From assembly GCF_963853765.1 (NCBI RefSeq), contig NC_088855.1, positions 14,446,001 to 14,510,000 of the forward strand: a stretch of 64,000 bases of DNA, read 5' to 3'. Of the stretch, positions 1,220 to 36,200 are shown piece by piece. The notes under the pieces were generated by a model. It was given only the letters and a program-made list of their open reading frames with translations, searched no databases and was not told the DNA's origin. Position 1 is the first letter of the stretch. Each line of letters begins with the position of its first letter. The position numbers and the translations under genes are program-made. The stretch comes from Magallana gigas (Eukaryota).

Positions 1220-1277
1220 GATTAATATACCACAAGTGTTCTACACGGTAGTACTAAATCTCCAAGTATCACCAAGG

Positions 1278-1291: not shown

Positions 1292-1292
1292 T

Positions 1293-1504: not shown

Positions 1505-2056
1505 GGGATCTCAACTGTTTTGAAGATATTAAGGGACTTGCTGTTTGAGGGGGTCAGGACCACCCAAAGGGCCCATGACCTACATAACATTTGATGCCCC
1601 TTGACATCAGAAACATGAATATATATGGTTTAGGGGTCATAATTATAACAGTTTCTGAGATATATGGTAATTTCAAATCCCTGGGGGTGGGGAATACCCC
1701 AGGGGTCAGATCTAATAAACCCTATATATTGCCAGTAACAGTAAATATGTGATTATGAAAACCCTATATTATTATCTTTGTCCGTTTTCAAGTTACCATT
1801 TACCGGTACAATAGAGTCTACGATTCTTCCTACAAGGTTCAATATTAGACCCCCCCCCCCTAAAAAAATACTGGTTGAGTAAAATCAAACCAGGGTGCAC
1901 AACTAGATATGTAGGCCTATCATATTCTAGAGTTTTGTACAATTCAATTTAGCCATCTCTGCGAAACAAGTTCAGAGCGGGAAAGAAGAAAACGAAGAAT
2001 ATTAAGAACCGTACAAAAACAATAAGTCTCCAAATTTCATTCGGGAGACTTAATAA
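1505..2056. mobile_element. Helitron/Helentron-like non-autonomous repeat
   Basis: Ends in a 9-bp stem hairpin TAAGTCTCC (2023-2031) / GGAGACTTA (2044-2052). Internal motifs (gggatctca; catgacctacat..tgatgc) recur at about 2150-2230 and 3220-3440. The left boundary is approximate. Confidence 0.4.
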
Positions 2057-4830: not shown

Positions 4831-5231
4831 TGTAATAGAGTTGTAGAACCCGTATGTGAGGGGTGCGGTAGCTAAGTACGCATGTGTGAATGTTAGTATA
4901 AATGCAATTTTATAAATATTTCTATTAATTTCCTACGACAACACGTCATAGATGTATGATCTCCACTAAGGTAGCATTCCTCAGAAATTCCTTACGGAAC
5001 CTATGGATTAGTTCTGGTAAGGGATATGTCCATATTTATTTAAATAACTGCAACTTAATAATTAATATTGTGTAAATGAATTGTACGAGTGTTTCATTTT
5101 CAATTAAGGTCACCTTTACTTTATATTACTATGCGTAAATCATCTGCAATGAAAAACTTTTGTGAACCTTCATCAATGGTTATTTATATTCTGTTCATAT
5201 GATGGAAAACACCGTCACAATGGCGCCCAAC
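4831..5231 (+). mobile_element. Possible orphan LTR with tRNA-Lys PBS
   Basis: TGTAAT at 4831 ... TCACA at 5215-5219, then TGGCGCCCAAC at 5221-5231 (canonical Lys-tRNA PBS start). TATAAA-like sequence near 4896. No internal ORF follows. Confidence 0.4.
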
Positions 5232-5389
5232 ATGCTTTAGAGGTGACCACATAATACAAATAAAGATTTTAAAATCGTTTACCAAATGATCAATACATCA
5301 ATATTGTAGTACATATGTGCTTTGTGTGTGGAAATTTCGAAGAAAAAAATCTTCAGTGTTCAGTATCGATTTGTTGTTTAGCTGCTCAT

Positions 5390-6133
5390 TACGGAAGCCC
5401 GTAAGTGCCACATGATATATATAAAGAAAACTACATATATATATAAAGNNNNNNNNNNNNNNNNNNNNNNNNNNNNNNNNNNNNNNNNNNNNNNNNNNNN
5501 NNNNNNNNNNNNNNNNNNNNNNNNNNNNNNNNNNNNNNNNNNNNNNNNNNNNNNNNNNNNNNNNNNNNNNNNNNNNNNNNNNNNNNNNNNNNNNNNNNNN
5601 NNNNAGAAAACTGAATATATATAAAGAAAATCGTGTATATATATATAGATAACCACTGATATATATATATAAAGAAAATCGCGATATATAAGCAAGAGTG
5701 ATATCTATATAAAGCCAAAAAATTCCACTACGTGACCTTCACCGATTGCAGCCTAATGCTGCATATAATTAACAAACTCCGCCTACAGAGGAGAGAGGCC
5801 ACAAATGCAATTATCGCTCCATGGTCAGCCGATCAAAAGAGAGGTAAAGAATTTATTTGTACTATAGACAATGTGTTAAAAGAAATTGCATGTAACTCTA
5901 TTGTAACGAAAATATGTTTTACTGTTTAATATTTATATCCTTATAACCATCGCCTTAAAATTGTTTATAAACTGTTTAAATTACTAATAGATTGATAGGA
6001 GTGTCTGGCTACCCAAAGCACAAAAGTTTATTCCAACAAAAATTGTGGATATATATATATCAGTGGTTATCTATATATATATACACGATTTTCTTTATAT
6101 ATATTCAGTTTTCTTTATATATATATCGTATTC

Positions 6134-6170
<37 letters not shown>

Positions 6171-6259
6171 TTTTCTTTATATATATAAATATACGATTTT
6201 CTTTATATATATATGTAGTTTTCTTTATATATATCATGTGGCACTTACGGGCTTCCGTA
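5390..6259. mobile_element. Foldback non-autonomous DNA transposon, IS3EU-like
   Basis: Termini TACGGAAGCCCGTAAGTGCCACATG... / ...CATGTGGCACTTACGGGCTTCCGTA. 6-bp TSD GCTCAT at 5384-5389 and 6260-6265. TIRs over 200 bp are built of (TA)n-AAGAAAA subrepeats. TAY..RTA ends with a 6-bp TSD match the IS3EU superfamily description. Confidence 0.75.
5449..5604. other. Assembly gap (156 N) inside the left TIR of the foldback element
   Basis: Run of N. The flanks match the reverse complement of 6201-6259 and 6050-6114. Confidence 0.99.
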
Positions 6260-6393
6260 GCTCATGTTGCTAAACATGCATATCTAGATGAACACTGATA
6301 TATATTTGACATGGTAAAGCTAAGTATTCATTTATTCGAGGTTGTTGTTTACACCTTTAATGGTATAAGTACACTTTTTAGATAGACTCTTAC

Positions 6394-8840
6394 TATCATT
6401 TTGGCATCCGTGGGTAGAATTGCAGTAAGCCTCAGAACAGTTGTTTGGGTAATTATTGCAGGAGGAACTGCATCGCTTTCCATAATGTGGATAATCGCAC
6501 GCTTTGCTGCAATTCGCACTATAAAACCCCTGCGGACACTCTGTGTAGAATTAATTATCATTTTGTTACACAACAGGTATATAACATAAGATTTGATAAC
6601 TTTGAAAAAACAAATGTTGTCATTAATTAAATACTCGAATATAAGCGCTTGCCTCTAAAGAACACTTCTTATATCTCTATAGAAGCCACTATTAGGCTTA
6701 CACCTTTTTACAAAGTAGTTTAATTCGGTCCCTAATCAAGTGTTCTTGAAATTATTCTATAAATAATAAATCATCAGATTAATCCTTCATATATGTAACT
6801 TTTTTAAAATTATAATGAATTTTAAGCGTATATACTTGGTTTGTGAAATTTACATCTAAAAGGAGAGAACGAGGGTCCACATCTCTCTTCTGAGCAATTT
6901 TAGAGTATCAAATACAAAATATCTAGACTTTTAAAAACTTTCTCGAAACATACCTACGTAAAAATTTGACCTCCGTGTTGCCTAAGCCTACCCACTAGAA
7001 TGATAAATAGATCAAAGTTGAATTTTCACTTCTTGAGGATGCTTTCACTCAAGTTACAGCTTTAATGGCCGAATGGCTTTAGAGAAGATTTTTTTCCAAA
7101 TTCAATATATTCCACTGTAAAGATTAGACCCCCCCCTTCCCAATGTACCTCCCCCCCCCCCCCCCCCGGGATTTGAACAAACTTAAATCTACACTACCTG
7201 AGGATGCTGAGGTTCAGTTTTTCTGGCCAAATTTGTTTAGAGAAAATGTTTGACAAATACAAACATATTTTTAAAAATTCAAAATTATCTACCCTTTTAG
7301 GAGGTTCATGAGGACGTGGCCTTTATTTGAAGAAACTTGAATGTCTTTCACCCAATAATGCAATGTGCCAAGTTTGGATGAAATTGGGCAAGTGATGTTT
7401 GAGAAGAAGATGAAAATGAAAAAAGTTAACAACGATGACGACGCAAACGACAGACAATGGACACAATTTTTTTTAACGTTCCCGAGCTTTCGGCTCAGGT
7501 GAGCTACCAATATCTTTAGTAAGAAAGATGTTTTGTTTTCTTGGGTTTTTTTTACATGGTTACACGAAATACATGTACTATTAAGTCAAGATATAGAGCA
7601 AAATTTGGTGCAGTTTAATATTTTTTAATGGCCCCACTAAAACTAGACGAGAGAATTCGTGATTTATACAATATTATTAATCATCAATCACATATTACAA
7701 TTGGAGGAAAATCGTTATCGTAGTACTTCTTTAATCTGCTTCGAAGTGCGAAAAATGGCAATCTCCTACATATTCCTTTAGTATATTGAACCTCTTTTTG
7801 AGATTTTGAGATGGCCCAAAAAGGAATCAGAGATTGGTAAAAAAAAAAAATGAGCTATTGATAATGACCACGGGTATATTTAAAGACTTTGGTCTCAGTT
7901 TCCAACGTTGGAAAAGCAACCCCGGATCAATATTTAACATTGAAATATGACACCCTGTTCAATTTTTAATCTGGGTCAAAATTCTTCAGTACACCGGCTC
8001 TGATGCTAAATGATTCTTTAGGAGTTGTTTATGTTTGAGATATACAGTGTATAATTGCATGGTAGAATCGGTTAATCATGTCGACATATTTTCTGTCTTC
8101 ATGTTGTGAATATTTTAAAGTGAAGATACGTAAAATAAATAATTTACGGGCAGTACGGACAACGGGCTGTCAAGCATTGAATGTTAGAGCTTGTTTATAT
8201 GGGCGAGATTGATTGAACGACACGAGTGACTCGGGTTGCCAGAGTTGTCAATAAAACATGTATTTCACGACACTAGTGTTGAACCCGTGTCACAAAAGTT
8301 TACTCCTACTTTTAAGCTAGTACACTGTTCAAATGTCAATGCACGACGCACGACGTCGGAAACAACGGGACAGCAATATTCTTTTTGTTTTTTATTCTAA
8401 AAGTATGGGCATAGTACATGTAAGTAATAGACTATCCAGATAATGAACAAGTATAAACACGCTTTTTGCTTATTTACTATTTGGATTAAAATATTAGCAT
8501 AGGTATACAGGTTTACTTTATGCAAGCTCTATTGACTTAGCTCTTACTTGTACCTTCTATTCGTCAACTGAAAGCCCGAACAGCATTTACTGAAAGTAAA
8601 AAAAGGTTAAGTGAAACACAAACTAATTAAAATTAGACTTGTAATTCCGCTCCTCTACGGATTACAAGTCTAATTTTAATTAGATTGAGTGAAACACAGT
8701 GTAATGAAGGCTTATCGTATTTTTTTCTCTCCAAATATCCACCTACAAATTCCTTCTGAGTTGTTTCTTCCGCAGCATCCTTGGCTGGTTACATTACTCA
8801 ATTCAAGCGCAAAACACACTAACCAGAAATACCTCTTCAT
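6394..8840 (-). pseudogene. Receptor paralog R1: signal peptide + CC module + EGF-like exon; frameshifted, no TM exon found
   Basis: Exon 1 8840-8743 (MKRYFWLVCFALELSNVTSQGCCGRNNSEGIC). Exon 2 from 8589 (KCCSGFQLTNRRY); its available GT donors (after 8554 or 8548) give phase 2, whereas paralogs have a 44-bp phase-1 exon. Intact 147-bp EGF exon 6540-6394 (CPQGFYSANCSKACDYPHYGKRCSSSCNNYPNNCSEAYCNSTHGC). Confidence 0.7.
6865..7506. mobile_element. Helentron-associated non-autonomous element
   Basis: 3' end ...gagctttcggctcaggtgagcta with a small GAGC/GCTC hairpin (7484-7496), preceded by gac/gacaga-rich tracts. A similar end occurs at about 26890-26927. Family assignment is from recall of bivalve repeats, not a search. 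Confidence 0.5.
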
Positions 8841-13685: not shown

Positions 13686-16600
13686 TCAAGCCTCATTTGA
13701 ACCTATTTCATCACAATATGGGTTGTGTACAGATGCTGTTTGATCAGTGTTTTGGTCAGATAATGATTCCATATGCATGTACATGGTTGTGTTTCTGGGT
13801 TCACTTACAGACTTCGTACCACCCATGTTGTCTGCTTCACTTAATCGGACAATCTTAGAGTGATCTTGATAAACTGGAGGATTGTTGATGCTGTTGCTAC
13901 TAGCAACTAAACCACGGTCAACATTTTGGTGGGATCTGGCACTTAACAATCTGAACTCCTGTTCACTTGGTTGTGAAACAGTCATTGATTTGTCAGACAA
14001 GCTGCCACGTCTTCTCCTTAAAATCAAGAGACAAATTAGTCCCAAAATGACAAGAAAGCTCATTGCGAGGGTATATCCGAGTGATTTTACGATAGAGGCC
14101 GACAAGAGTGAGTCTTTTGAATTACAACGCGTCCCAAGGACTTCTCTGGCTGATGTATTAATATATATAGTAGCCATTGGTCTTGTAACAACATGGTTGG
14201 TCTGTTTTCTTGAAGAATCTATGGGCATGTTAGTGAAAAGTCCGCTACCTGAAAATAAAAGGCATATACTATAAAAGTATATAAAAAATACTCAAAAATG
14301 CATTTTGTGTTATTTTCAGTTTTTTAAACTCACTTTTTCAAAATACTGATTCAACTGAATAGAATTTCAAGCCATCAAAGACGAGGGACAATTTGTCAAA
14401 ATGTTATACTTTTAGCATGAATTTACCATTTATTGTCTCTTCCCTATGTCTTTGAATAAATTCTGAAGTTCCCACTTGCGAGTCTTTGTTAAGTGTCGTT
14501 GAAGTTTGAAGGCCTACAGACGTGAAGTTAATTTAAATGTATACTGCACTTTCATCAATATTTGTTGACCTGGCCCATGAGGTTAAATACTAAATGATGG
14601 TCAATGCTATGCGATATATAATAACAAATTACATGATTAGGATCATTGGCCATGGATTTACGTATCCTGATTTTTCAGGGATGCTAAAATTCTACTAATT
14701 GGACCAAACAAATCTACCAATTACACTTAGTAGACCTATTATTGATAAGCTTTTGTTTACTTCCTTATAGTTCATATAACATTAATATATTCAATATTTC
14801 CTCAGTCAATTTTCTTACTTCTACGCATCTTTGGTTTTTTTATTTTCAAAACACTGACTAATAGAACCGTGGACTATTGATTGTCTACAACTACATATAT
14901 TTTATTGATATCGAAATCTTACACTTATCAACAAATCACACAATGACCTGGCTTAAAAAGTCTTCAATATTATGAGGAACATTTTGAAAATCGATAAGAG
15001 TGTTCTTAGTTTAATGATTTTTAAATCTATTCTGATTATGTCATACAACTGCACATGTATCTTATCAAACTTTTGCATTGAATTGATTTTAGTTTTGTAT
15101 GGTCTTTGTATTGAAAATTGAATAAATTTGTATGAAATCTGTATTTTCCAAAGAAATAGTACATGTATATGCCGTTCATCTGTTAAAATGACAGTATTTT
15201 TAACCGCCTACCAGTGTTGTATATATTTTACTTTGCAGCTTGGATCAATGTATTTCCTCAGATTGTAAATGCTAGATTTTTATTTTATTTAGATTATTAT
15301 TATTTTTTTTGGAAATTCGATTGCACTAGATAATTAAGTATAGAAAATGGAATTTTCCATTCCAACACCGAAGGAAAAGGCAAAATGGCTCTATACAACA
15401 CTAAGGTTTTTATTGTAAAAGTGAAGAATTATGGTGAACTCTAGACTCATATCTACTTATATCCCTTTTTCCTATATAAGGTACAGGTCTGTCGATGTGT
15501 TATGTCATCTTGCAGGAAGAAGTTTCACCATTTAAAAGAAAACATTCAATTTCTTATTTTGTGCCTTGTCCAATTAAACAAACTTATAAATAATAAGTAT
15601 GAAAAACACCTTCATAATTAAGGGTAAAAAACTGGTATTATTTCAGAGAGAAATCAATATCGACGGACAAAGGTTCTTTTGTTGATATGGTTAGTTAAGA
15701 TGCATCGTTGACGTTTGAAATGTATATAATATATTTAAGAAATATTACCATGGCTTTGACATCCTAGAGCAGGATGGCAGTCATCTCTGGAACAGTTGTT
15801 GGGATCATTGCTGCAAGAAGATCTACATAGGCTTCCATACCAAGGATAAACACACTTTATATTGCATTTGTCACCGGAATACCCTGGCGGACATTCTATA
15901 AGAGGGAAAATACTACCGTGAAACAATTATTTTAAATGAATGAAACACAACGTCACAATGCCAGTATTCAAGTATAATTTATTAATCGTGTTACATTGCT
16001 TGAAAATATATTTACAAGTAAATTATAAATGCTGGCGTTGTGGTAGTCCATGTAAATTTGGCATATTTCAAATCTAATAGATATTAGGTATGTCCAATTA
16101 TATTTCAGTATGGTTATGTTATTTTATCAAATGATAATAATAATCTCTATTTGTTTTTGGGAAATAATGAATATCATATCTTATTTCTTATAAATTTATA
16201 TCTTATTATAGAGGTGATTTTCTTTAAAAATTTAATGGTAAGCAATTTTATGATAGGGCAAAGTTTGATGTAAAAAAAAAATTAAGTGACTTAAGACAGA
16301 ATATTGAATTTGGTTTATGTCATACCCATGATACTTTCAATTGACGTATTTCTCCGAATCAATATGATGAATAAAAATCTTTCCAAACCCTCAGTGATAC
16401 ATAGATTACGTTAAACATTTAATGACTTCGATTATTAAATGCTTTTGATTTGAATTGAGTACATGTTTGATCCATGTTCAATGGTTAGAAGTAATTGCAA
16501 GCGAAAAGGACTTTTAATTATCTGATAAGTGAGCTATTTACAAGTTTTCTATTAATATTAATCGTAGTGTGATAAATGTACTCAATTCAAACCACGGACA

Positions 16601-16996
16601 CAATAACTCAGACGTTAAAACTATCTAGTATCAAGTATTTAAAAATTTAAATATGTTCTTGAAAATGTTACAATTAATAAAATTCAATTATAAAAAATCA
16701 TACAATAGCATTAGATGTGAATGAATTACATTAAAAATACCTTTACCTTGACATTTTCCATTGACCATGTGATAACTTTGACAACATTTTCTGAAACGTT
16801 TAAAAAGATTTTTGAAAAATAGTTTTATATCTGATGGTACATATACTTTGATGTATTTTGGCATTTTTGAGATGTTACTTTTCCTCGCCCAATAATATAC
16901 CTACATGCATACTCCTTCATGTATACCACAGCATCCAAAGTTGGTTGCATCACACAAATCAAGCAACAAACCAATCAACCAGACAAACTTCTTCAT
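13686..16996 (-). CDS. Receptor paralog R2: type I membrane protein, miniature MEGF10/Draper-like (about 310 aa)
   Basis: GT-AG exons 16996-16905, 16790-16747, 15895-15749, 14513-14427, 14248-13686 total 933 nt and give an open frame: MKKFVWLIGLLLDLCDATNFGCCGIHEGVCIKCCQSYHMVNGKCQECPPGYSGDKC...HPALGC, stalk, TM (SLGYTLAMSFLVILGLICLLIL), RRRR, then tail. Confidence 0.85.
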
Positions 16997-17099
16997 CGTT
17001 GACTTAGATGTGTGTGTAAATTATAGATTTACGTTGCTCATGAACAAACAAAAATAAACAGTTCATGGTGCAAACGGATATCATGAAAGAAATTCCCAC

Positions 17100-17101
<2 letters not shown>

Positions 17102-17169
<68 letters not shown>
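17102..17169. repeat. (TA)n microsatellite, about 34 units
   Basis: Read directly; about 105 bp upstream of the R2 ATG. Confidence 0.97.
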
Positions 17170-17172
<3 letters not shown>

Positions 17173-17882
17173 TGTATTTCCGACGTCCGTGCCAGCTCGT
17201 GACTGGTTTTTTCCCTTAATATATGAAATATTAACACTTTTAAACCAAACTTAAACATAAGTAAGGGTGGTTGTATTCATTCCCTTACCATGATCAAAGA
17301 AAAGCCTTCGAATGAGTGAAGATCGTGCTTAACTTGAATACCTGTTCTACAGGTTATTCGCTACAAATAGTAGGCAATGGCTACAGGTTCAAATATATAA
17401 AAGCAAAACATATTACACGTGTTCTAGTACCTAGGATAAATTAATTTATACGCAAGTACCTTTAAACTTGATATTCAGGTTAAGAACTCTTTTTTACTTG
17501 ACACGATTTAAAGAAGGCGATGATACAATCTTAACAAGTGTAATATGTGGTTCAGTCCTACAGATTAAATATATCTTATTTAAACATGACTAATGCATCT
17601 TTCTTACAAAAGATACAGTCCCCCAACAAATTTTAATAGGATTCTTTGTCTACAAAATCATCCGGAATTATCACGTCAAAGCAACATTGAAACGTGTTTG
17701 TTCCCATACTGTTAACATAATCAAGACAATAAAATACAGTAAGAGTAAAAATATTGTCATTTATTGAAAAAAGAGGCAATTGTTTAATAAAATGTGGCTG
17801 AAAGACCTACAAACAGTTAACTAAATAAACTACAAAATCGAATTACAATGGAAACAGAAGTGATTTATTTCAAATTTAGAAG

Positions 17883-17885
<3 letters not shown>

Positions 17886-17930
<45 letters not shown>
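17886..17930. repeat. (CT)n microsatellite
   Basis: Read directly. Confidence 0.97.
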
Positions 17931-17933
<3 letters not shown>

Positions 17934-19437
17934 ATGTCAACATTGGTCATGGTTTTTTTTTTCAACTTTCATTACATACGTGTCTAAATATATCCTCTAT
18001 ATTCTCTCGAGGAACAAATAAACAATAAAAATGTAAATTAACATGTTTTATTTATTTCCCGTAACAGGCAGTATATGCATCTAATATAGAAGAATGTTCC
18101 TTGTCACAGACGTTTTAAAAAAATAACTCAAAACTGCATAGAATCCAAGAAAAAATAATACGGTATGGGTAGATTTTTGGTTTAAAAAACAAAGATTATA
18201 ACATATACACACATCATATATCAAGAGGTCAACAAATTACCAATCAGACCCAACTTAGAATATTGAATGGTATCTTTTCAAGCCATAAGCCATAATTGGT
18301 TAGTCCATACAATTTAAAAATTTTAAATTTAAATATTTTCTTATATCTTTCTTAAGAGCTTTTTTTCTGAAGGATAATATAGTTTTTAAATAGCCACAAC
18401 CAGTCGGCCCAGTAGTCTGCTTGGTACTTAATTTTTATTCAATACACTATAAATCTTTAAATTCCAAAAGCCTACAATATGGCAATTGTTCTTTTTATTT
18501 CTTAAAAACTTGTCATAAATATTACGATTTACCTTGATATATGTACACTATGTTATTTATAACACACAATGGGACTACCAATTTAGTTGCATAAAACATA
18601 TCATGAAACATGTTTGTATGTTGGAATAAATTCTGTATGTGTTCATATTTACTACATATATTCAAATGCAAATTAATAAATATCACTTATATTAGAGACA
18701 TAAATAACAGAGATTGCCAACTTCGCCATAAGGGTGTTTCCTTGTTGAAAAAATGTTACTAGACCAACCTCACTTTGCGAACTACATATTAATAACCTGA
18801 GATAATGATCTTAAACCAAAAGTACATGTCTATTTTTTCATGAAAAATACACAGGTTTTAGACGTTTTTGAAACAAAAAATTGAAAAATAAGATTGATAT
18901 ATAAAAAATATATAGGCCAGCTTTAAAACATCGACGAATTCTCTGACGCTGGGTAGCCAACTGCCTCCTAAAACTCATCTTTTTATATTGTTTATTAGAC
19001 ATAAACTCATGAATATATAATATTTTGAATGTTTCGGTAATAGGGTTTAGCTGTTTATATTTTGATATAATCATTTGTTTATTAGAAAGATACACTGAGT
19101 GAATTAAAATAGGAATACTATACAATAGGGACCGCGAGATTTCGATCAGTTGCCAATCTCTGCTATTTATGTCTCTGCTTATATTGTTAAAAAAAACAAA
19201 CAAACCCTACTGTGCAAGATAAATATACCAGTGCCAATTAAACATTTCTGCTCCAGTCTGAGGTGTAATTTTCTCTTGTTTTATATTTTCCAAATCTATA
19301 TTTATCAAATTAACCTTACTGTCTCAGATTCCATTCTTAAATGTCATAATACGTAGTCATAGTTTACGACAACAACCACAGAATAGTAATTAAGCGTCAT
19401 TCATGTAAAAGTTTTCTGGAGCCTTACACATCAAAGC

Positions 19438-22253
19438 TTATGATTGAACACCGTCTGTTAAGGTTACATCAATATAAGATGGGTTGTCAACGGACGTCTC
19501 GGTGTCAACTTCTTCTCGTGATATCGGCTCCATGTATGTGTTTGTGGATTTACCAACCGATTCCTTCCTGCCTTTGTCGTCTGATCTTCTTAGATGAGAA
19601 ATCTCTGAGAGACCTTGATAAAGTGAAGAACCGTTCATGCTGTTCCTAGGGATGTCAGCTACACCGTCCACACTTTGCTGAAGCCTTAATTCATGTTCAG
19701 CTTGTGAAATATTTAGCAATTTACCTATCGCGCCTTCTCGTCTTCTTTTACATATGAAGAGACAAACCAGTCCCAGAATTACCAAAAGGCTAACTCCGAG
19801 GGTATATCCAAGGATTTTCACGACAGACACCAACCAGAGCGCTTCGGTAGAAGTCTTGTCATTTCCATGGACTGCTGAAGTAGGTTTATCTGTATATAAT
19901 GGTGTTACGTGTCGTGCAACAGTAGAATTCACTTGTTTTTCTAAAGAACTTAAAGTAGTCTCGGCGATGATTCTTCTACCTAAAGAAAAGGGAATTTGAT
20001 AAGCATGACTTATCTTACTAGTACTTTTAAATCGAGTTTTGGCTGTTGTAATTTTCCAAAAGTACATATTTTAAACATTTTTTTCTATTAAAAGCTGAGC
20101 TCGTCAAAAAGTTACCAATACCAACAGATCCACTATTTTCTATGGCAGGAAACGTTTTAGATTTAAAAGACAAGGCACATGTACCAATCGACTTTATTTT
20201 TGTACTTGATTGCTGAACAAATATATATTTACTATTTGTTGTTCTCTGTCGATAGCTCTGTGTAATATATGATGTTCTCTTTTGCAGATCTCCCGTCGAT
20301 GTTTCTCTAAAACCTGCAAATGAGACATGAAAGTCGTAACAAGGCTGAATTCCTGTTTGTTATTTTTAAGTCAAAAATTTAGCATTATAGTTTTGACTGG
20401 TGAAATACTTAGTACGGTCTACAGTCTACTCAATTTCACTAAATTATAATTACAATTAAAGAAATGTAAAATCTGTTATGATTGTGATTACGCGATCTAT
20501 ATAGTCATTTTTTGCATAAAAGTATATCAAGAATTCTGAAGTTGACTAATGATCTATGTTTGTCACTTCTAATAATTTAAAAAAATAATTGACATTTCCG
20601 ATAAAAATGAAATTAAAAGGAGATATCTTTTGAATAAATATCCATTGCATTAGCTACAGTTGTTAATCATGTATATTTTAATTTTAATCATAAATCTGAA
20701 TAATCTTTTGGCTATCATAAATATACAGTTCTAAATAGAAAATATATTAAACTGTTGTTTTTTTATATATTTTTTTGTAGTAAAAGCTTCACCGTGCCAC
20801 TACATGTTCAATGACACTGCTTTACAAACACGGAACTCTCTCACCTACTCTTTTGGCGTGTGAAATGCAAAACGCGTTCCTCTAACAAGGATTTCATACA
20901 AAATTCATATTGTTTCTGTAGAGGGGTTACATACATTATTATCATTTAAATGGCAAAACATCTTATAAGTTGATGTTGTCAAACGTAGCAATGGGTATTT
21001 AGATATGATTAATTTGAAAAATGAATATTTATTTTCAGATAAAATTCGCAAGCAAACGTGAAACCTCAAACGTAATGTAAATGATAATTAGAGTAAAATA
21101 TCTAACCCTTGTTTTGGCATCCAAGAGCCGGGTGGCAGTCAGGATAGGCACAGTCACATTTGGACCCACATTGCACTCCATACCAGGGGTATGCACACTC
21201 TGTGTCGCACTTGTCACCAAAAAACCCAATCGGACATACTGTATTAAAGGAGAAATCTAATTGGCTAAAGACCGTACAACTACGAAAAATAGAGGAATCA
21301 TGTTTAACATAAACAAATTCAATTTCAACATACAAATATCAAGTTGGTGGGGGTTCGACAATATTTCTTTTAGTTCAATCATTTGTTCTGATTTATTCGG
21401 TTTATTATCGGGTGGAGGTTGCTACTATTATTAGTGCTATTATTTCAAAGTTCTTTTTTTTATAGAAAGAATACGCTTGGTTACATTAAATTATGACATT
21501 AAAAACTTAATTATTATTTATCGTTATTTATTCTTGATTAGCAAATTATGATATAAAACAAATTGATAAAGTATTGAATCGTAACATATTTTAGTGCTGT
21601 TTCATGATCCAAATAAGTGTTAAAAGATTGAGTTGATGAAAATCAGAGAAAATACTTCCGCTATTAAATGACAATCCAATACATATATAATGGGTTTATT
21701 TAATGTGTCAAACAAGATGCTTACGATGCCCCGTCCTCAATTATCCCTTATAATTCATTAAAGGACTCATACACTAGTATTATCTGTTCATACATGTATC
21801 ACAGATTAGGCAATGACTAAATGAAGGAACTAAAGTTTCATACAAATCTGTTGATTTTGATTTATATATAACGGATAACATCTTTAAGATGGTAACAATG
21901 CTTTGCGCTAATAATGCACTTTGTGCAAAGTTTCCGTGAAAATTATTCCAAATAAAAAAACAATACTTGACAATAATCTTAAATCAATATATAAGATGTA
22001 TCGACTAACCTTTGCACAATCCGTCAGAATTGTAATAATTCTGGCAGCATTTACTGAAAGGAAAGTTAGATACGAAAAGTTAAAATTGAAACACCACATA
22101 GATTGTTTGAGAGAAACATTTTAGGGGATCTCAAAACGGCAACATCACTGACCTACAAAGGCCATCGACACCTATATTTCCGCAGCATCCAGCTCCATTC
22201 TCTGCAAAACACAAATCAAACAAGAGGCAAATAAACCAAACATACTTTTTCAT
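19438..22253 (-). CDS. Receptor paralog R3: type I membrane protein, miniature MEGF10/Draper-like (about 299 aa)
   Basis: Exons 22253-22153, 22053-22010, 21238-21107, 20313-20233, 19979-19438 total 900 nt and give an open frame: MKKYVWFICLLFDLCFAENGAGCCGNIGVDGLCSKCCQNYYNSDGLCKVCPIGFFGDKC...HPALGC, stalk, TM, KRRR, and a tail with SLYQGL, TYMEPI and NPSYIDV. Confidence 0.87.
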
Positions 22254-22727
22254 CTCGACCAAATTCATCGGAACAATGTTGATTATTGATTCATCTAATA
22301 CTCATACTAATGCATAAAGTGTTAGTTTCCCCTTTATAAATATGTTATTCACGGAAATAGGGTAAATTTTTGAGGAGATTGAATGATTTCGCGAAACCTG
22401 TGCAAGCTTGTGTCTTCCCCGTGTCCATTTCGGATTGTCTTAATGTGTCTCTGTTTCATATGCAAAAAATTGCGAACCGGCCCGATCCGAGTAGCAGAGT
22501 TGTGATACAAAAAAATACGAACACCATACTCGATGTTGTCATGGTTCAGGTTATTATTTGTCAGGTTATTAATATCTGGCTTTTAATTTTTCATCTTATG
22601 ATAAATGTTCCAAATTGCAAAATTTGTTTTCCTTGTGTAAACAAAACTTCCTGTCAATATATGATTGAATTTGTATATATTTTTTTTTGTCCTACTTCCG
22701 TTTTTGTTTTCTGTTTTAATTGAAATT

Positions 22728-23045
22728 TTTAGATGTGGTATGTTTGGCTAAAAACTATAATTTAACAAAATCCTTTTTTGTTTTTGTTATATAATCATAA
22801 TTAAATATGTCCCTATATCTTCAACTTCAACAGAGCTTCATTGTTAAAATTTTTAGATGTTATATGTTTGGCTATAAACTATAAATTAGCAAAGGATAAA
22901 TCCTTATTTGTTTTTGTTGTTTATTTTTTATCCTTTTATAATCATAATATGTTCCTATATCTTCAACTTCAACAGAGCTTCCTTGTTTAAAATTTTAAAT
23001 GTGATATGTTTGGCTATAAACTATGATTAAACAAGGGACAAATCT
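22728..23045. repeat. Imperfect tandem repeat, about 2.5-3 units of 120-145 bp
   Basis: ttttagatgt..tatgtttggcta.aaactata recurs at about 22728, 22850 and 22992; tatatcttcaacttcaacagagctt occurs twice. Confidence 0.75.
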
Positions 23046-26000
23046 TCCTCTTTTTCATCAAAAACACAGAAACCGGCAGTGTCAATATTTAGCGACATTT
23101 TCCATCGGAATTCTTGTAAGCCTTTGTGGTATTGTCTGTATCATTCATGAAGATTGTAAGTTTAAATCATGGCGGTTTGATTGAACGGATGGATTGGGCG
23201 TCTAAATCTTACCCGAAAGCATCAGCTGGCCATGGATTCTTTACACTCCACGTGTTCATGAAGAACGCCATGATGCGAGGCATCCAGTCGGAAGCCAGTC
23301 GCACCTCATGATCGAAGCAATAGTCGTTAATATAATTATAATCGCTTTATATGATATTTAATACAAGTTTTGTTAGCATTTTACAATGATAGAGAATTTG
23401 AGATTTAAAACTTGTACGGATACGCGAACCTGTGTAAAAACTACACGTACACGTTTTTGTAATTTCTTAACTTGTAGGATATAAACGTGTATATAGTATA
23501 TCGGGTATTACTATGTTTTCTGTATGATATCATCGTGTCTTTATTGAAGCACTGAGGTTAAACCATTTATCTAACACGTTTTTATTTGCTAATCCCGAAG
23601 GCATCATGTTGAGAGCAACCTAGACGAGGGCAAGTAAGACCTAATCCCCTTACATGCTGAGCAGAGCAGGTCCTACCACTACAGCTGCGGTCGTCGCTGG
23701 AGATCAACCACGGGCACCGTTTCCCAGTCAAGTGAATACAGAAACCCTTTCCCAGACAACACCTATGGACCAAGTCCCCAACGTACAAGCTTCTGTTGGC
23801 CAAGGTAAGAATATATTTCCTCCAAACCCTGCACCGTTGTGTAGCGTCACAGGTGCCGTAGGCGTACCCATCAGCATTAGTCATTGTTATATTTTGCAAT
23901 GAATTCATTCAGTTGCACAAACTCTTGCCTACCAAAGCTAGTGAAGAGCCGCAACAACAATTTGCATTTGTTAACGGCTAAATAATTATTAAGCCTAAAA
24001 CTAAGGAAGCTAAGACCAACAATATTGAAATATGGATCAATGCACCCCCTTGTTTACACTAGTTTTCGCTATCGAATGCCAGTTGAGGATCGGCGTCATA
24101 CATCTTTTTGTCAATTGCATTGAAATCTCAGATTTGCTCGTATATTTTGTGTAATTCGTATACAACTGTGTTTAATTATCAAATAGTTATACCATATGTA
24201 GCAATAATAAAGCAATGACAATGCAGCCATTCGAGACTTACTACCCTTGTTGGTAAGTTCCATTTATCGAAGAAGAATACACTTGCGCATGTCAACAATA
24301 GCATTTCCTCTTTTTAATCCTTAATTCACTTACTTTATGTATTAGATGCTAATTTATACTATAAGGATAAGTTACCCAAGTCTTATCACTATCTTGGCTT
24401 TTAACAAATGTCTCCTTTCTCCTTTTTGGTGTTGGTTTATTTTTATGATTTCAGATAAGAATCCAGTTTCCTCTACGTCATGGCTTTGTCCGTGCGTCGA
24501 TCCTTGCAAGGGATACAGATTTGCTATAGAAGCCATCGCTGGTTAACTGCTGTTCTCCTTCCATGGTTACCAACAATTCATGGCTCATTATCATTGAATT
24601 GACATTGAACTGTTGGCTACCAAATGCCAATTGATGATATTTACCATACGTATCAATAATAAAGCCATGACAGTACAGCCATTCATCTTCTGTGTCTTCT
24701 TTCACGATTGTACATGAAATTAAGATATAAATATTGAATATAAATATGAAATTTTTATTGGTATCGCAGAATATAATTGGATTTTAGTTTTATAATATGA
24801 TTCAAATTACTTCGACAAATCATATCGTATGATACAATGACACATTATATATTATAAAAATGTTTATATCATGAAATATTTACTATTTCATGTAAGTTAT
24901 TTTAAAAACCATATGATAACGACTGATATTTTTTATAACTTGAAAAACAATAGTTAAATCTATATAGTTATTGATATATAGTTATAAAATAGTTATATCT
25001 ATTGACCACGCTCCGATGCTCATGCTCCTTATTACTTATATTTATATTATTTCCAATTTTTACACTTTAAACAACATAAATTAAAGCCACCATTTTATCT
25101 TCGCGGCGAATACCGGTTTTTTATTATATAAGACACATCCATTTTGTGTTGCTCATTTTTTTTTATGAAATTAATGGATTTTAGGCTTCACAATTGATGT
25201 GTAATGTTATCACAGACAAATACAGTAGAAAATGTAAATATAAATGGATATTGAGTCATTAGTTTCAGATGCTGTGGGAAGTTAAAGCTATATGATTAGG
25301 CAAAAAAATTTTTAAGGAGGTTGGCACATGAAATAGTAGTAATGTCAATCATCCGGAAACCACTTGGATATAAAGATGGGAATCTAAAATGTTCATTTAT
25401 TTAATTTGTGACCCATGCCATTTTTGGAAATATATGGGCCCAAACAAAATTGATAATTTTCCTGAAATCAAACAAATGTTTATAGTTTGAACTATTATTT
25501 AGTTATGATTTTAATACAGTATGAAGTTGAACACATATAGTGACTATAAAAGTAAAATCTAAGTCAAAGTTTTTAACTTCTTGCTTTACTGGTGGCTTCA
25601 AAGGCCAGTACATAATGAACACAACAACAGATGTTACAAAATTTTGCAGTACTCAAATTATAACGTAAATTAAAAAAATTATAGTAATATCATCTTTCCA
25701 AAACTTTGCATACAGATAAACATACATTTAATGTCTCATTTAAGAGTAAAACAAGTAGGGGTTACATCTCAAAAATTTGAGATGTAGCATGAAATACTTT
25801 ATGCCTTCTATGAAATATAAGCTAAATATGCCAAGATGTACTGATAGAAATATCGAAACATTGTATAAATATGTTTTTAGAACATTATGAATACATCGTA
25901 AAACACAAACTATCTTGAAGTTTGGTCTGCGCTGAAAATTAGGAAGCTAAATTAACAGTACTCAGGGTTGAAAATGCATGAGTATTTGGGTCTTCATTCG

Positions 26001-27086
26001 ATAGGTTTGTGATAAACCTTTGCTTTTCTTGAAAGCTTATAAAATTGTCGATTTATCCATATACAGTTCGCTATTTTTCTTCTATCATTAAGACCATGGA
26101 CTTTCGGTAGGACATAACAAGCTATTTCTTTAAAAGATAAAAATGGCGCTGGTTTCAAGCGAAATATGCACCGATTGCGTAGTCTTAGCTCAAAAGCCAG
26201 ATCTATCTTGTTGATTTCAAAGAGCCAAGGCCCATGGCTGAGTGGCTAGCAATGAATTAGACAGGCCTACGTCACATTGCTGTTTGACACAACTATTAAA
26301 AGTCCAAGCTCTTGTTTAAATAGTTATGAGAAAAATATTGAAAAGCGTTTTCCTGCAAAGAGGTCAGCGAGCATATTAAATAAAAAACGTACACTGCATT
26401 ATTTTATAACGCAGGCATGTACTGGCGTAGCAGATACCTTTTTCTCGTAACAAACATTTTTCAATTTACATACTATAGTATAGAAAATATAAAGTTGAAC
26501 GAGTGGGTTGGTTGATGGTTGAAATTTATACAAAAACAATACCCCTCCCCCCCCCCCCACGGATAAGGATTTTGGGGAATGGGGGGGGGGTGAGGGTTGT
26601 CGATAGCCCCCCCCCCCCCCCTCCCCAATTTTAAAAAACGATGCTACGGGCCTATAATGTACGATATTTTCTTTTAAATTCTTGTATATTTGATAGCTAA
26701 TATATTGCTGATGATCTTTCAAAGGTAGTTTCATTTGTTGAATTTTGTACATTGCATAGCAACATTTCAAATTTCCGAAAACAAGAAAGGCGAGGTGATT
26801 CGACTGTACAAGAGCAAGTCGAATCCACTTTGAAGTTTTTCAAGACAATGACGACAACTTGAAGGACAGACAACGGACTTATTTCAATCAAAAATTCTTG
26901 TTTGAGCCTTTGGTTCAGGTGAGCTGAAAAAAAAACCATAAGCCAAATTGTACTTTTGTTTCTAATATTAATCACAATAAATCTGTCCAATTTCGAACAG
27001 TTTTCTGTACAACTTGTGTGTCTATACATGCTATGGAAAGATTAAAAAAGTAAATTCGTTTGATTTTCCGGAGCCTCGATCATATT

Positions 27087-29850
27087 TCATGATCGAACAC
27101 TGTCTAATAATGTCATATCTACGTAAGATGGGTTGTCGATGTCAATACATTCCCGTGGTATCGGCTCCAGGTATGTGTGTGTGGATTTACCGACTGATTC
27201 CTTCCTCCCTTTGTCGTCTGATCGTCTTAAACGGGGGTCAGCAGAGAGATCGTGATACGGTGCAGAACTATTGATGTTGTTTCTGCTTGTGTCTACCACA
27301 CGGCCCACATTTTGCTGACAACTTGCATTGTACAGTTTTAATTCCTGTTCACTTTGTTGTAAATTATTCATTGATTTGCCTGGAGTGCTTTCTCGCCTTC
27401 TCTTGAATATGAAGAGACAGACTAGTCCCATATTTACCAGAAGGCTAACCCCGAGGGTACATCCAAGTATTTTCACGACAGACACCAACCAGGGCGCGTC
27501 AGTTGTATTGAGGTTTGTCCCAGCGACTGTTGTACCTACATATATTGGCGTCGCGGGAGTTGAAACATTAGAATTGAGTTGCTTTTTTGAAGAACTTTGA
27601 GTTGTTTGTGTGACAATTATTCTACCTAGAAACAAAAGGAAAGAATATAATATATATACTTCTGATTTATTGATTCTGAATATATGGAATACTAGTATAT
27701 ATGGAATTTGAGTTCCTTTGACGACAATTTGAACGTACTTTGACTTTTTGATCAAATATATACATTCTATCAACAAAACAAGAGGACATTTTTCATTTTC
27801 CGAGTATCATTTGCAAGTGCTTCCGTTAGTCTCTTTGACTGAAGTGGCTCTTCTACAACACAGAACGCCCCTACTTAATTCTTTACTGAACGATATGTCA
27901 GACAATTTCCACTCATTATTGTGATTTTCCCCAAAAGTAAATTAAAAACCTTTTTGAAACAGAAGAGATATTTTTTCCTTACATATGCAATGTTTTCTTT
28001 TTTACTACAGCAAAGACATATATTTCCCTTCTTGTGTTAGCTTTGGGGCGTCTTGGATTTTATGCAAAGGAATAAGATGCATTACAAAAATCTAACCATT
28101 GTTCTGGCATCCTAGAGCAGGATGGCAATCGGCCTTGGAACAGTTGTTTGGGTAGTCCGTGCAAGAGGAACCGCATAACGCCCCATACCATGGGTAAACA
28201 CACTCCGTGTTGCACTTATCTCCAAAAAATCCCAGCGGACACACTGTATAAGAGGATAATCTTATAACAGGAACACAATTTTTCATTAACGAAATCCTGT
28301 ATATTAAACCCTGTGGTTTTCATTATATTTCGTTATTTTTAAGTGATAACAATCGTTTAGTATGAATTTTAACGCGCTTGTCATTTTTACTATCCTTCAA
28401 CTTGATCCTTGTAATGTTTTCAATGTATGGTTTGGTTGTTGGTTTTTTTGTTTTTGTTTTTTTTTTTTGGGGGGGGGGGGGGGGGCTGTTGTTTTTTTCT
28501 ACATCATTCAAGAAAAATATCAATGACAAAACTTTGACTTTACATCAGTTATTATTTCCGTAATTTTGATCGCTTTATCCATATATATCCTGAGCGTACA
28601 GTGAGTATATATATGAGAAAACTAGAGCGGATGCGTATATTTTTGCCTGATCAACATATAATATAGATTACTAACACTCTTAATAAAGTAAACAGTGAGT
28701 TACTTCCTTGATCCCTAGTACAATGGTATTCCTGTAAAAGAATATTAAAACATGACACTTTTTACGCTAATATACGGTAATACGTATAAAGAACTATCAT
28801 TGCCTTAATTAACTTCAATTATGTTGGAAGTGCTACTTACAATTTTACAACAACTAGGTTTTTTAAAAGATCTTCTACATAGAAAAGACCATGGGTTATA
28901 AAGGTCAACTTGGTATGCTAGCAATACAGTCCTATGATCGATCAATTATGGGTAAATCTCTCCCGTTCTGCCATTATATTGGATCAGACAGTTTGCACGA
29001 ATAACAGTGTATGGGTTCATGTGAAGATCTACAAATTTTCACCATTTTTGATACTTTAAAAAATGGAATTGAAGAGTGTGATAATGGTATGCTTCATAAT
29101 TGTAAATGTCGCTCTGTACTCCGATCAAGTATTCTTTACTTAGAGACGAGAGTAGGGAACCTTTGAACATAAAAACTTCACATAAATGGCCAAATTTTAG
29201 TAGAGGCAACAACACTCGTAATAACTATATACTTTGTCGATTGGCTGGATGTCCAGCAGACGAAAAGAGAGCTATAAAGAATAATCTTAGAATTAGCGTT
29301 TCCCTTCCCTATCGGGATCTAGACACAAAATTGATCAAAAGTGGCTGAGTAGCCATGTTTCAAAGTCATGACCGACGCACGAGGGATCACACATGTCGAT
29401 GGAAAAAATAACAGTAAGTATTCTGAGACACACTGGTGGCCGAAAAATTCATGTTATATTGAATTAAAAAATATCAATTATTGATATAATAATTACATAT
29501 TTTTTCTACCTGAAGCCACAAAATCTAATAGTGACATGTATGGATCTTTGATGATTACAGTATGAGTGTGTTTAATCAATTTACCTTTGCATATTCCCTC
29601 CAAAAGGTGGTAATTTTGACAGCATTTACTGAAATTAAAATACGATAATTTTATAGTCCAAATAAATTAAACAGCAAAAAAGTTTTAAAATTTAGACAGA
29701 AGATACTCATTTCCTTTGTCTTCTTAAACATAACTAAATCATCACTAACCTGCAGATTCCGTCGACGTCTATATCCCCGCAGCATCCAGAGTCATTCTGT
29801 GCCCAACACAATTCAAGCGCGAAACACAACAACCAGACATACCTCTGCAT
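27087..29850 (-). CDS. Receptor paralog R4: type I membrane protein, miniature MEGF10/Draper-like (about 276 aa)
   Basis: Exons 29850-29750, 29628-29585, 28243-28097, 27625-27087 total 831 nt and give an open frame: MQRYVWLLCFALELCWAQNDSGCCGDIDVDGICSKCCQNYHLLEGICKVCPLGFFGDKC...HPALGC, TM, KRRR, and a tail with PYHDL, TYLEPI and NPSYVDM. No separate stalk exon was resolved. Confidence 0.85.
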
Positions 29851-33288: not shown

Positions 33289-36200
33289 CTAATAATTCAT
33301 TTTCCTCATGCGAATAAGTTTAGGGTTGATGCCTAGTTTAATGGACCTCATGGCCATAGCCCTGTTAAAATGTCGTTGGGTCTTTACCTCTCCTGGGTCA
33401 TCGAAACTGGCCTCTATGGAAGTAATGACACCAAATATAACCCCTAACACAAGAAACAAAATAATGAAGAGCGTATACTGAGTCACTGTAGGACTAGGCG
33501 TTCCTTCCATTTCCCTGAGATGAGCTTTCGCTGGCTGAAAACCTGGATTGAGGTCAAGGGCATGTGTAAAATGTAGGGCAGCTTCCTGGTAGTGACCATA
33601 AGCCTTCAAGATTTCGCCCAGCGTAAAATGTTGTAGCCAGGTGTTCTGGGTGGAGGTCTGCATGACTAGAGAGCGTCTCGTCAGAAATATTGCATCGTCT
33701 AAATACTGGAGATTGAATAGTACCCGTGCCATATTCAGTAAAACTTCTGGATTGTTTGGCGATATTGACAGTGCTTTTCTGAAGCATTCTATAGAGTTTT
33801 GTGTGTTTCCTTTAATTCTCCAAAAATTACCAATCTGGTTGTAAACATGAGCTGAATTAGGATCCTGAAAATACATGTATAAAGGAATCAATGCATTATC
33901 CATCATGCATTTGAATCATGACAATAGTGTTACCGGTATATCCAGTATTTTAAGAAAAACTTATGTAAATCATACACAAGAAAAATCTTTAATATCATTT
34001 TTAAAGGGGCATGGTCACGATTTTGGTCAAATTTTATTTTTATGTTTTTATTATTTACAATGCTTTATCAATGCATTTCTAATGATCAAATAAAATTTGA
34101 GAGTCAGTCTTAAAGTTATAAGCAAGATACAGTGCTCACAATTCTTTGTCATGTAAACAAGACTCTAGCCCTGTTTTTGTTTACATGGGATCAATATGCA
34201 AGTAAAAAATCTTTTTCCAGCTAATTTTTCTATTTTTTATTTATCTTAAGCATTAATAAATAGTTCCTAACATTTAAAACATTTGTTTTAAATTTAAAAC
34301 TGAAATTTTTCTTCAACGTTCAAAATGTAAACAAACGCTTTGTTTATATTGCGAAGAATTTCAAGCTCTGTAACATGCTTACAACTCAACAAATGACAAT
34401 CAAATTTTGGTTGCCTATTAAAAATGCTTTTCTGAGGAATTGTAAAATATTAAAATCGGAAAAATAATTTTTGACCAAAATCGTGACCATCCCCTTTAAG
34501 GTAAACATGATAAAGAAAGATGCATTAAATTTGACACCTTCAAAAAAATTTCATGTGAAAAAATCTTTGCCACTTCAAAACTTTCATCTAAAACTGATGC
34601 ATCAGTTGAACTGCTGCCTCATTGATCAATATTTTCACTAGCTTGCAGCAATCCATCCTAAAGTTAAGGATTACTACTTGTATAGGAAAGCTACTTACAT
34701 CTTTTTTCATCTTTTTAAGCTTTTCTTCCAGTTCATTGATATCGACATGGGAGTTCTTGCTGCCTTTTTTCTTGAATATGAGTGCAACCTCTGGCTCAGG
34801 AATGTGTCCATGTTCGTTTCTGTTTGCGATTCCCCTCAAATGGTCATATTGGGTATGATTCACCGGCTTCCCACAACTTAACTCCTTTTTCTTCTTCTGT
34901 GTTTCACTATAAATAATCATAAAATCATAAAGTTGTTCTTTCAATACTATATTCTTTATTCTTAATGATATAAACTGCTTAGCATTTAATGAAAATGACT
35001 TCCATTTGATAAGTATAATGACAGACATTTCTTCATTCCCCTAAACAAGGTATCAAGAATCAAATATGCCACCCTCCACCTCCCAAACCATAAACAATTA
35101 CTTTCTCACAAGATACTGACCGAGGTTTTTGGGAGTTTTTCGGTTTTTTAAATAGATAATTTTATATTAAGCAGGCAATATATTTATATGACTGAAGTAA
35201 TTTATCTCTTGACATTGACCCTCAAGGTATTGTGACCTCCAAATACGGGTTCTGTACTCTTAAGGGGTACCGGTGCACAAAGCTTGATGTCTGTCAAGTA
35301 AACATTATAAGGAGTATCCGGTACTACTACTTATGTATAAAGTATGATTGCTGTCCACCAAATGGTTCTTCTGAAAATGATCATACAACACTAATTGATC
35401 TACCGGATGATGTCCAGAGTAGCTTGACCATTGACCTTTATATATCAAAATGATAGTTCTTCGCTCCTTAAGAGGTATCTGTCAAGTACACAAATGTTGA
35501 TGTCTGTCCAACAATGTGTTATAAAGATATTAAACAAACAATATTCTACTCAATACTACATCCATAGATGTTAATTTGCCCCTTCACCTCCAACCTTGTG
35601 ACAACAAAATCAGTTATTGCTTGGGATCATCTTATTCCTTTTGGGAACCTATGTGCCTAGCTTGGTGCCTGTAAAGCTGAATCTCACGGAGATTATAAGT
35701 AGTTTCATATGCAATGCCAATTGCTGCTGTCAGCATTTCTTTCTGACATTTTTTTAAAACTGCCATGCAAGGACTGCTGTTTGACTGATAATTGAATTAT
35801 GAATCAATGTGTGAATTCATAGATAACAATTACTACATTTATTTCATATCTTAATCTTTGCCACAACAATACTATGCTAGTTACTTTTAAAAATATTTAA
35901 GTTTTAAGTGAGTGATTGACTTAAAAATAGAATGACTGAACTCCTTGATTGAAAAAATAACACTGGCTGTAAAAATCAACTTGACTATTCGATGAAATAT
36001 CATTCTTATCCCTATAGACCTGAGAAATACCATCTGTAACAGTTTGATACAAGCATATAGGTTAATTTCCCATTGTTGCAAACTACAGCCAAGAAGAAAA
36101 ACATTCTCAAATCTGGTAATGACCATTAGTTGCATGAGTAAAGAAGATATCCTAGTTCATTGAAGTTCATTGAAGTATTCATCAATATAAATACGGTACA

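Follow-up and report, generated by a model that had tools for sequence, protein, structure and literature searches.

A tandem array of uncharacterised EGF-type receptor genes with related tyrosine motifs in the oyster Magallana gigas

The window studied here is a stretch of 64,000 nucleotides of Magallana gigas (C3:14446001-14510000 of a 564-Mb assembly of 29 contigs, over which genome-wide matching was run), AT-rich eukaryotic DNA with a GC content of about 32%. Its minus strand carries four tandem copies of one short gene, R1, R2, R3 and R4, as established by tblastn and tblastx comparison of the paralogs. We propose that R2 to R4 and an apparently broken R1 probably form a recent tandem array of uncharacterised, oyster-expanded receptors related to CED-1, Draper and MEGF10, in which the motif differences between the cytoplasmic tails are divergence on one inherited tyrosine cassette. 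R3 would then be ancestral-like, R4 would have taken conservative substitutions, and R2 and the lineage of R1 and R0 (a copy outside the window) would be losing motifs under relaxed constraint. It rests on results, reported below, for the gene models and their expression, the homology of the proteins, the conservation of the motifs and the rates of substitution. The receptors would be a variant of a kind already known, in a lineage-specific family that is still uncharacterised.

Gene models, expression and protein architecture

R2, R3 and R4 have four exons each, with canonical GT-AG splice sites and identical intron phases. Three minus-strand open reading frames (ORFs), at 13686-14228, 19438-20067 and 27087-27776, hold their terminal exons. 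The true limits of exon 4, behind canonical AG acceptors, are 14248-13686 in R2, 19979-19438 in R3 and 27625-27087 in R4; position 27625, the end coordinate in the original prediction for these tails, is the exact start of R4 exon 4. The gene models, with the length of the coding sequence (CDS) and the reach of the untranslated regions (UTRs), are as follows.

13686..16996, minus strand: R2 gene, CDS of 281 amino acids (aa); exons 16996-16905, 16790-16747, 15895-15749 and 14248-13686; 5'UTR to about 17065
14424..14512, minus strand: alternative 89-nt exon of R2, between exons 3 and 4
19438..22253, minus strand: R3 gene, CDS of 272 aa; exons 22253-22153, 22053-22010, 21238-21107 and 19979-19438; 3'UTR to about 17940
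27087..29850, minus strand: R4 gene, CDS of 276 aa; exons 29850-29750, 29628-29585, 28243-28097 and 27625-27087

All three genes are expressed, and splicing is confirmed for R2 and R4. The three splice junctions of R2 are present in RNA contigs from two runs (joints 16790/16905, 15895/16747 and 14245+3/15746+3), as are the two joints of the alternative exon (14245>14424 and 14512>15748). Inclusion of that exon shifts the frame and leads to a predicted ectodomain-only product of 121 aa with no transmembrane segment. Either secretion of this isoform or nonsense-mediated decay is conceivable. The whole spliced CDS of R4 is contained in a 930-nt Logan assembly contig (L001, encoding the 276-aa protein P0001), which was counted as mRNA on the grounds that it is spliced. 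RNA contigs over R3 cover 17940-19599, taking in the terminal exon together with about 1.5 kb of 3'UTR, and its exons 1, 2 and 3 are joined in P0014, an R3-like protein prediction from a Logan assembly; the junction of exons 3 and 4 was placed by analogy with R2 and R4 and is thus a presumed one. Over R2 and R3, depth was close to nil in the raw-read RNA runs X21 and X24, sampled at 1%.

L001 comes from another animal. Its exons 1-3 differ from those of R4 in the window by 12 nt (7 aa), and none of the 539 nt of exon 4 differs. Its V>E, F>Y and D>Y variants recur in P0014, which suggests two ectodomain haplotype types common to the paralogs, through gene conversion or old polymorphism. Beyond exon 3, P0014 continues with unrelated residues and then with exon 1-2 sequence again; this repeat could reflect a haplotype with a tandem duplicate, a back-splice or an error of assembly.

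At about 275 aa, each paralog is a small, single-pass type I membrane protein. The AlphaFold model of P0001 has a signal-peptide helix at residues 2-16 and a transmembrane helix at residues 142-177, followed by a tail of about 105 aa that is predicted to be disordered (predicted local distance difference test, pLDDT, about 50). The ectodomain, with 14 cysteines, reaches a pLDDT of 91 when modelled alone. It consists of one EGF-like module per protein, about 75 aa long, in which a CCxxY motif precedes an EGF-like unit, and a glycosylated stalk lies between this Cys-rich module and the transmembrane helix.

One cassette in the cytoplasmic tails

The features read from the translations of exon 4 are listed here.

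19750..19812 (R3), 27405-27467 (R4) and 14019-14081 (R2), minus strand: transmembrane segments, with K/RRRR directly after each
19465..19626, minus strand: R3 tail cassette; SLYQGL 19609-19626, LRRSDDKGR 19567-19593, TYMEP 19525-19539, VDNPSYIDV 19465-19491
27114..27338, minus strand: R4 tail motifs; KLYNAS 27321-27338, APYHDL 27246-27263, LRRSDDKGR 27204-27230, TYLEP 27162-27176, IDNPSYVDM 27114-27140
13713..13877, minus strand: R2 tail motifs; PVYQDH 13860-13877, MYMHM 13770-13784, VHNPYC 13713-13730

The three tails are 103-110 aa long, and the motif sets that the original prediction had described for them are all present. So are the GxxxG that it noted in the transmembrane segments of R3 and R4 (GYTLG and GCTLG; the R2 counterpart is GYTLA) and the membrane-proximal cysteine common to all three, which stands six residues ahead of the basic stop-transfer and is nearly invariant among orthologs. 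In the same ortholog alignment, the G, L and C columns of the transmembrane segment are invariant or nearly so. That the tails carry aligned tyrosine motifs is borne out, with two corrections. R4 has a fourth tyrosine that had not been listed (KLYNAS), and in R2 the middle tyrosine aligns as histidine: HMES is aligned to YMEP, while the tyrosine of YMHM lies in a four-residue insertion, two positions upstream. The alleles P0004-P0007 carry motifs identical to those of R3.

The R-type tail is confined to this chromosomal neighbourhood, where it occurs in R2, R3, R4 and R0 (tail exon L007, about 63 kb away), along with a short-tailed relative, P0015. Its orthogroup was aligned as 10 sequences, namely the R tails, their relatives and the orthologs of C. 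virginica (LOC111137767), S. cucullata and O. edulis. The resulting consensus is [S/A]xYQxL...LR[RK]SD[DE]KGR...STNTY[M/L/I]EP...Phi-x-NPxY[I/V][D/E][V/M], where Phi is hydrophobic. Tyrosine is retained at its three columns in 8, 8 and 9 of the 10 sequences, against a mean majority of 5.5/10 in the other tail columns. At residue -5 from the last tyrosine all 10 have V or I, which extends the consensus for phosphotyrosine-binding (PTB) domains to Phi-x-NPxY. The cassette reads SLYQGL/TYMEP/NPCYHDV in C. virginica and SEYQTL/TYMEP/NPSYVEV in S. cucullata. Between the first and second tyrosines stands the best conserved tail element without a tyrosine, LR[RK][SA]D[DE]KGR, with an invariant aspartate; this block may be a serine phosphorylation site or a basic-acidic docking site.

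How easily such motifs arise by chance was estimated from 20,000 shuffles of each tail. An immunoreceptor tyrosine-based inhibitory motif (ITIM) appeared in 12-19% of shuffled tails and YxxM in 6-13%, and neither is therefore significant alone. Yx[DE]P appeared in 1.4-3.2%, NPxY in 0.5-1.8% and Phi-x-NPxY in 0.1-0.4%. NPxY and YxEP are significant, and it is their conservation across species that shows them to be real. The motifs behind the inhibitory and phosphoinositide 3-kinase (PI3K) arms of the original prediction are hence those that chance supplies most easily, and ITIM and YxxM calls made on a single sequence are weak evidence.

Tyrosine motifs extend beyond the orthogroup. An exhaustive HMMER search returned 192 relatives at E<=1e-3, and the source is named for 13 representatives, which belong to Crassostrea (Magallana) gigas and angulata, C. 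virginica, Saccostrea and Ostrea, with one Pinctada sequence besides. The EGF exon has at least 80 matches in this genome, in several clusters. All named relatives are called 'uncharacterized' or 'hypothetical protein', with the exception of an older NCBI record of P0029, a distant oyster relative, as 'MEGF10'. Literature searches under six LOC identifiers of relatives gave no match, and those on MEGF10, oyster and NPxY gave nothing on this receptor family. An alignment of 39 sequences of the wider family has four conserved tyrosine columns in the tail, YxEI (36/39), YxxL/I (18/39), YxxP (25/39) and Y[LIV][DE][VM] (27/39), and the KLYNAS of R4 is what is left of the family-wide YxEI tyrosine. 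In 42 tails from outside the orthogroup, with expected counts taken from shuffles, Y[ILVM][DE][VMIL] was observed 21 times (1.6 expected), Yx[DE]P 10 times (1.9 expected) and Yxx[LI] 94 times (31 expected).

In a maximum-likelihood tree, R3, R4 (with P0003), R2 (with P0016) and R0 (with P0018) form one clade, with C. virginica branching earlier and Saccostrea and Ostrea outside. By this topology the array expanded recently, and in the Magallana lineage only. Of the paralogs, R3 lies closest to the ancestor in path length and retains SLYQGL, TYMEP and NPSY, matching the C. virginica ortholog. The closest relative of R4, P0003 (83% identical), has YQDL, YLEP and NPSYVDV, and the YxxM of R4 is accordingly not conserved. 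R2 sits on a long branch (0.95). In this genome it has neither NPxY nor YxxL (NPYC, YQDH), as the original prediction had it, but its peculiarities are not conserved: 15 R2-like sequences from other animals (P0016, P0184-P0195 and P0197) have NPYY, an intact NPxY, and in them YMHM alternates with YMHK. P0003 and P0016 seem to be extended at the C-terminus only because the gene caller read a TGA as W; for P0003 the DNA (L002) has a normal stop at that position, and for P0016 a stop is likely, given that the 180-aa members of its cluster end at the same position.

Nonsynonymous to synonymous substitution ratios (dN/dS) for exon 4, with each gene set against its close relative, were 0.36 for R3 (tail 0.29), 0.91 for R4 (tail 0.85) and 1.25 for R2. 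The tail of R2 gave 1.32, from 17.5 nonsynonymous and 3.5 synonymous changes, which is in line with relaxed constraint. Between paralogs, the Cys-rich exons are saturated at synonymous sites (dS about 2) with dN/dS about 0.1, and exon 4 has a dS of 0.58-0.9 (0.58 for R3/R4) with dN/dS about 0.4-0.5. The ectodomain is thus under strong constraint and looks older at silent sites, and the tail exon is younger or has undergone homogenisation.

Ectodomain homology, proposed role and alternative readings

A profile of 32 ectodomains searched against PDB matched the N-terminal fragment of human SCARF1 (PDB 8hna and 8hn0) with an overall E of 4e-9. The best stretch, at SCARF1 residues 52-98 (9e-4), covers the CPxGFFGxxC...YG..C EGF-like unit, and a second one (3.9 bits, not significant alone) places the CCxxY segment against CCAGW of SCARF1. 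The EGF repeats of Tie2 were matched at about 1e-6 (about 9e-7). Among Atlas look-alikes of P0001, which are found by protein language model, the ten best named ones are MEGF10, MEGF11, Draper and SCARF2 clusters with scores of 0.77-0.86; the tail alone brought up unnamed clusters only (0.80), and the matches of a wide VIA-align search were dominated by the transmembrane helix. The ectodomain is homologous to the SCARF1 N-terminus and to EGF units of the MEGF10/Draper type.

Like CED-1, Draper and MEGF10, the oyster proteins are type I receptors with Cys-rich EGF-type ectodomains, and R3 and R4 combine NPxY with YxxL, both of which the orthologs of C. virginica and S. cucullata retain, without canonical spacing of an ITAM (immunoreceptor tyrosine-based activation motif). 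They differ in that the family is restricted to oysters, in that motif order and spacing are not those of an ITAM, and in the extra TY[MLI]EP motif and LRRSDDKGR block. An ITAM reading of the tail was rejected, as each tyrosine is 16-25 residues from the next and Pro occupies position +3 of the first motif. SCARF1 (SREC-I) has several EGF-like repeats, and its tail is long and Ser/Pro-rich and is not known to carry this tyrosine cassette. Drosophila Nimrod-type receptors (NimC1, Eater) appear to share a CCxGY-like motif (CCQNY here, CCSGF in R1) ahead of an EGF/NIM-like unit; they may also resemble the oyster genes in the lineage-specific tandem expansion of small phagocyte-type receptors, while NIM repeats have a different Cys spacing. 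We know of no Nimrod tail that carries this cassette.

The tails of CED-1, Draper and MEGF10 contain NPxY together with YxxL or an ITAM, which are read by the PTB domain of CED-6/GULP and by Src followed by Syk/Shark (PMC8092387, which also mentions NIM repeats), and the SH2 domain of vertebrate Vav is specific for pYMEP peptides (PMC2193212). By analogy, the oyster tail may be a disordered docking strip of short linear motifs derived from the family ancestor. Clustering of the receptor by ligand would lead to phosphorylation of the tail tyrosines by Src-type kinases. The phosphorylated YxxL would then be bound by a Syk/Shark- or SHP-type reader, YMEP by a Vav- or Crk-type activator of Rac (pYxxP is a Crk-type ligand as well), and Phi-x-NPxY by a PTB adaptor of the CED-6/GULP type. 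The overall role would be that of an engulfment or recognition receptor like CED-1, Draper and MEGF10. Oysters depend on innate immunity and phagocytic haemocytes, and their greatly expanded families of small EGF-type receptors are still annotated as 'uncharacterized'. One tyrosine cassette that combines NPxY and YxxL, as in CED-1, Draper and MEGF10, with a Vav-type YMEP offers a testable signalling hypothesis for many genes at once, and the R2-R4 array is a natural experiment in how a cassette drifts and decays after duplication.

Several results weigh against this reading. The ectodomain has a single EGF-like module of about 75 aa, as opposed to the many (about 15-17 repeats) of CED-1, Draper and MEGF10. 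Pfam found no family above threshold in the exon ORFs or full-length P0001 and no EMI domain in P0001 or 39 relatives, and EGF_PEAR1L matched weakly (E 0.006) in 2 of the 39. Foldseek with the ectodomain model placed Tie2 and SCARF1 in its best two rows, neither of them significant (E 0.2-0.3; for SCARF1, E 0.3 and a template-modelling (TM) score of 0.39), and the full-length model gave no significant match. In the tail, the O. edulis ortholog (ADYQSL/TYIEP/SSYVEM) has no NPxY, and NPxY was observed 0 times in the 42 outside tails, with 0.9 expected; the motif, and with it the NP before Y-Phi-[D/E]-V, is therefore specific to this orthogroup. The dN/dS values near 1 in R4 and R2 come from few substitutions and are also expected of a disordered tail outside its motifs. 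The SH2 and PTB specificities used are those of vertebrate domains and may not hold for oyster ones.

The original prediction saw in R3 (ITIM), R4 (NPxY overlapping YxxM) and R2 (YMxM) a paired set in which similar ectodomains are wired to inhibitory (SHP/SHIP), engulfment (PTB) and activating (PI3K) outputs, which we consider very unlikely. Its motifs are present as described in genes that are clustered and transcribed, with Cys-rich modules 58-74% identical among the paralogs, and the resemblance to vertebrate paired receptors (KIR, LILR, Siglec, SIRP) extends to related ectodomains with differing tails and to the strict ITIM consensus of R3. There is also a short-tailed neighbour outside the window, P0015, and a precedent for ITIM signalling in oysters, where CgNCAM1 recruits CgSHIP2 (PMC11841013). 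However, all long tails share one cassette, whose three motifs R3 and R4 have in common and inherited from an ancestor shared with C. virginica, Saccostrea and Ostrea. R4 has a YxxL at the position of the R3 ITIM, and the ITIM thus does not set R3 apart from a partner that lacks it. Whether this position counts as an ITIM hangs on S or A at -2 (S in R3, C. virginica and S. cucullata; A in R4, P0003 and O. edulis), and YxxM hangs on M or V at +3 (YVDV in the closest relative of R4, YVEM in O. edulis and an R0-like copy). In related species the cassette is kept, in Ostrea, Saccostrea and C. virginica, and the S of the ITIM and the M of the YxxM vary. Both motifs fall in the 6-19% range of the shuffles, and the features that mark R2 are polymorphic (NPYC/NPYY, YMHM/YMHK) in a tail with dN/dS about 1.3. 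What typically marks the activating member of a paired receptor system is a short tail together with a charged residue in the membrane, through which it couples to an ITAM adaptor. Such a partner is lacking here: the transmembrane core is without charged residues in R2, R3 and R4, and the juxtamembrane Lys, absent in Saccostrea and Ostrea, is common to all paralogs. The paired scheme fails on this defining feature, and also because its distinguishing residues are not conserved. The lower synonymous divergence of tail exons than of ectodomain exons is, moreover, the opposite of the vertebrate pattern. Three distinct outputs are consequently not upheld. An engulfment role keeps its link to CED-1, Draper and MEGF10 through NPxY, YxxL and the SCARF1-type ectodomain.

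The main rival to the inherited-cassette reading is one in which the tail motifs are trafficking signals. YxxPhi and Phi-x-NPxY are established endocytic motifs; YQGL, YHDL, YIDV and YVDM would bind the mu2 subunit of AP-2, and Phi-x-NPxY would bind adaptors with PTB domains of the Dab2, ARH or Numb type, in scavenger receptors that undergo constitutive endocytosis like SCARF1 or LDLR. The homology to the scavenger receptor SCARF1 fits this, each Yxx[LVM] in these tails also satisfies YxxPhi, and the V or I at -5 before NPxY, found throughout the orthogroup, recalls the LDLR-type FxNPxY. The NPxY of CED-1 may, in addition, bind CED-6 without phosphorylation (PMC8092387). We nevertheless judge trafficking improbable as the explanation. 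TY[MLI]EP, the tyrosine context with the highest conservation, has Pro at +3 and so does not fit YxxPhi; YxEI and Y[LIV][DE][VM] of the wider family contain acidic residues, which SH2 domains prefer; and several tyrosines in one cassette are seen more typically in signalling scaffolds. A further alternative holds that R2 and R1/R0 are non-functional, decaying copies and that the paralog differences are only birth-and-death turnover in a large gene family. The substitution excess in the R2 tail and the long branch of R2 agree with it, as do the loss of YxxL and of the canonical middle tyrosine and the NPYC/NPYY difference; R1 is frameshifted in this assembly, and the relatives of R1 and R0 have truncated tails that end in EVLF. 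Yet the R2 frame of 281 aa is open, its splice sites are intact and spliced R2 transcripts are present in two runs. Long-term constraint on the Cys-rich module of R2 is strong (dN 0.22-0.32, dS saturated), and in each of the 14 listed R2-like sequences whose tail is complete, three tyrosines remain at the R2 positions, which makes decay somewhat unlikely. It is, lastly, quite doubtful that the four-tyrosine tail (YxEI, YxxL, YxEP and Y-Phi-[D/E]-V) is an undescribed invertebrate immunoreceptor module with docking sites for Src, Syk/SHP, Vav/Crk and PTB readers and that the R cluster is a graded series that tunes or decoys shared ligand recognition; such a series would run from competent R3 and R4 through motif-poor R2 and R0/R1 and tail-less P0015 to the secreted alternative isoform of R2.

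Neighbouring copies and other features of the window

The fourth paralog of the window has ectodomain exons only, as found by tblastn and tblastx.

6398..8840, minus strand: R1; exons 8840-8743, 8589-8554 and 6540-about 6398

Exon 2 of R1 measures 36 nt instead of the 44 of its relatives and lacks the GKC codons of P0009, P0175 and P0010. Being 8 nt short, it brings the spliced frame onto stops in exon 3, and R1 appears to be broken in this assembly. A transmembrane and tail exon was not found at 1-6400 of the window, a region that includes an assembly gap of 156 N at 5449-5604. The missing exon may lie inside that gap, or it may be an L007-type tail as in relatives, whose R1-type ectodomain exons are spliced to an L007-like tail; in this assembly L007 is about 69 kb off. 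Two further family members lie outside the window, about 63-67 kb below its start (C3:14378472-14384825; L007 and L011). L007, the tail exon of R0, lacks the first cassette tyrosine (AYVDQ, LPAYLEV). The neighbour gene P0015 encodes 209 aa, of which only about 17 form the cytoplasmic tail, and its transmembrane core has no charged residue.

Three other features of the window were recorded.

33289-33906, minus strand: ORF with TPR repeats (TPR_2, E 2e-17), upstream of R4
81-815, minus strand: ORF with a retroelement-type aspartyl-protease match (Asp_protease_2, E 2e-6), at the window start
17004-17258 and 5378-6273: TA-rich low-complexity repeats beside R2 and R1, which translate as YIYIYI

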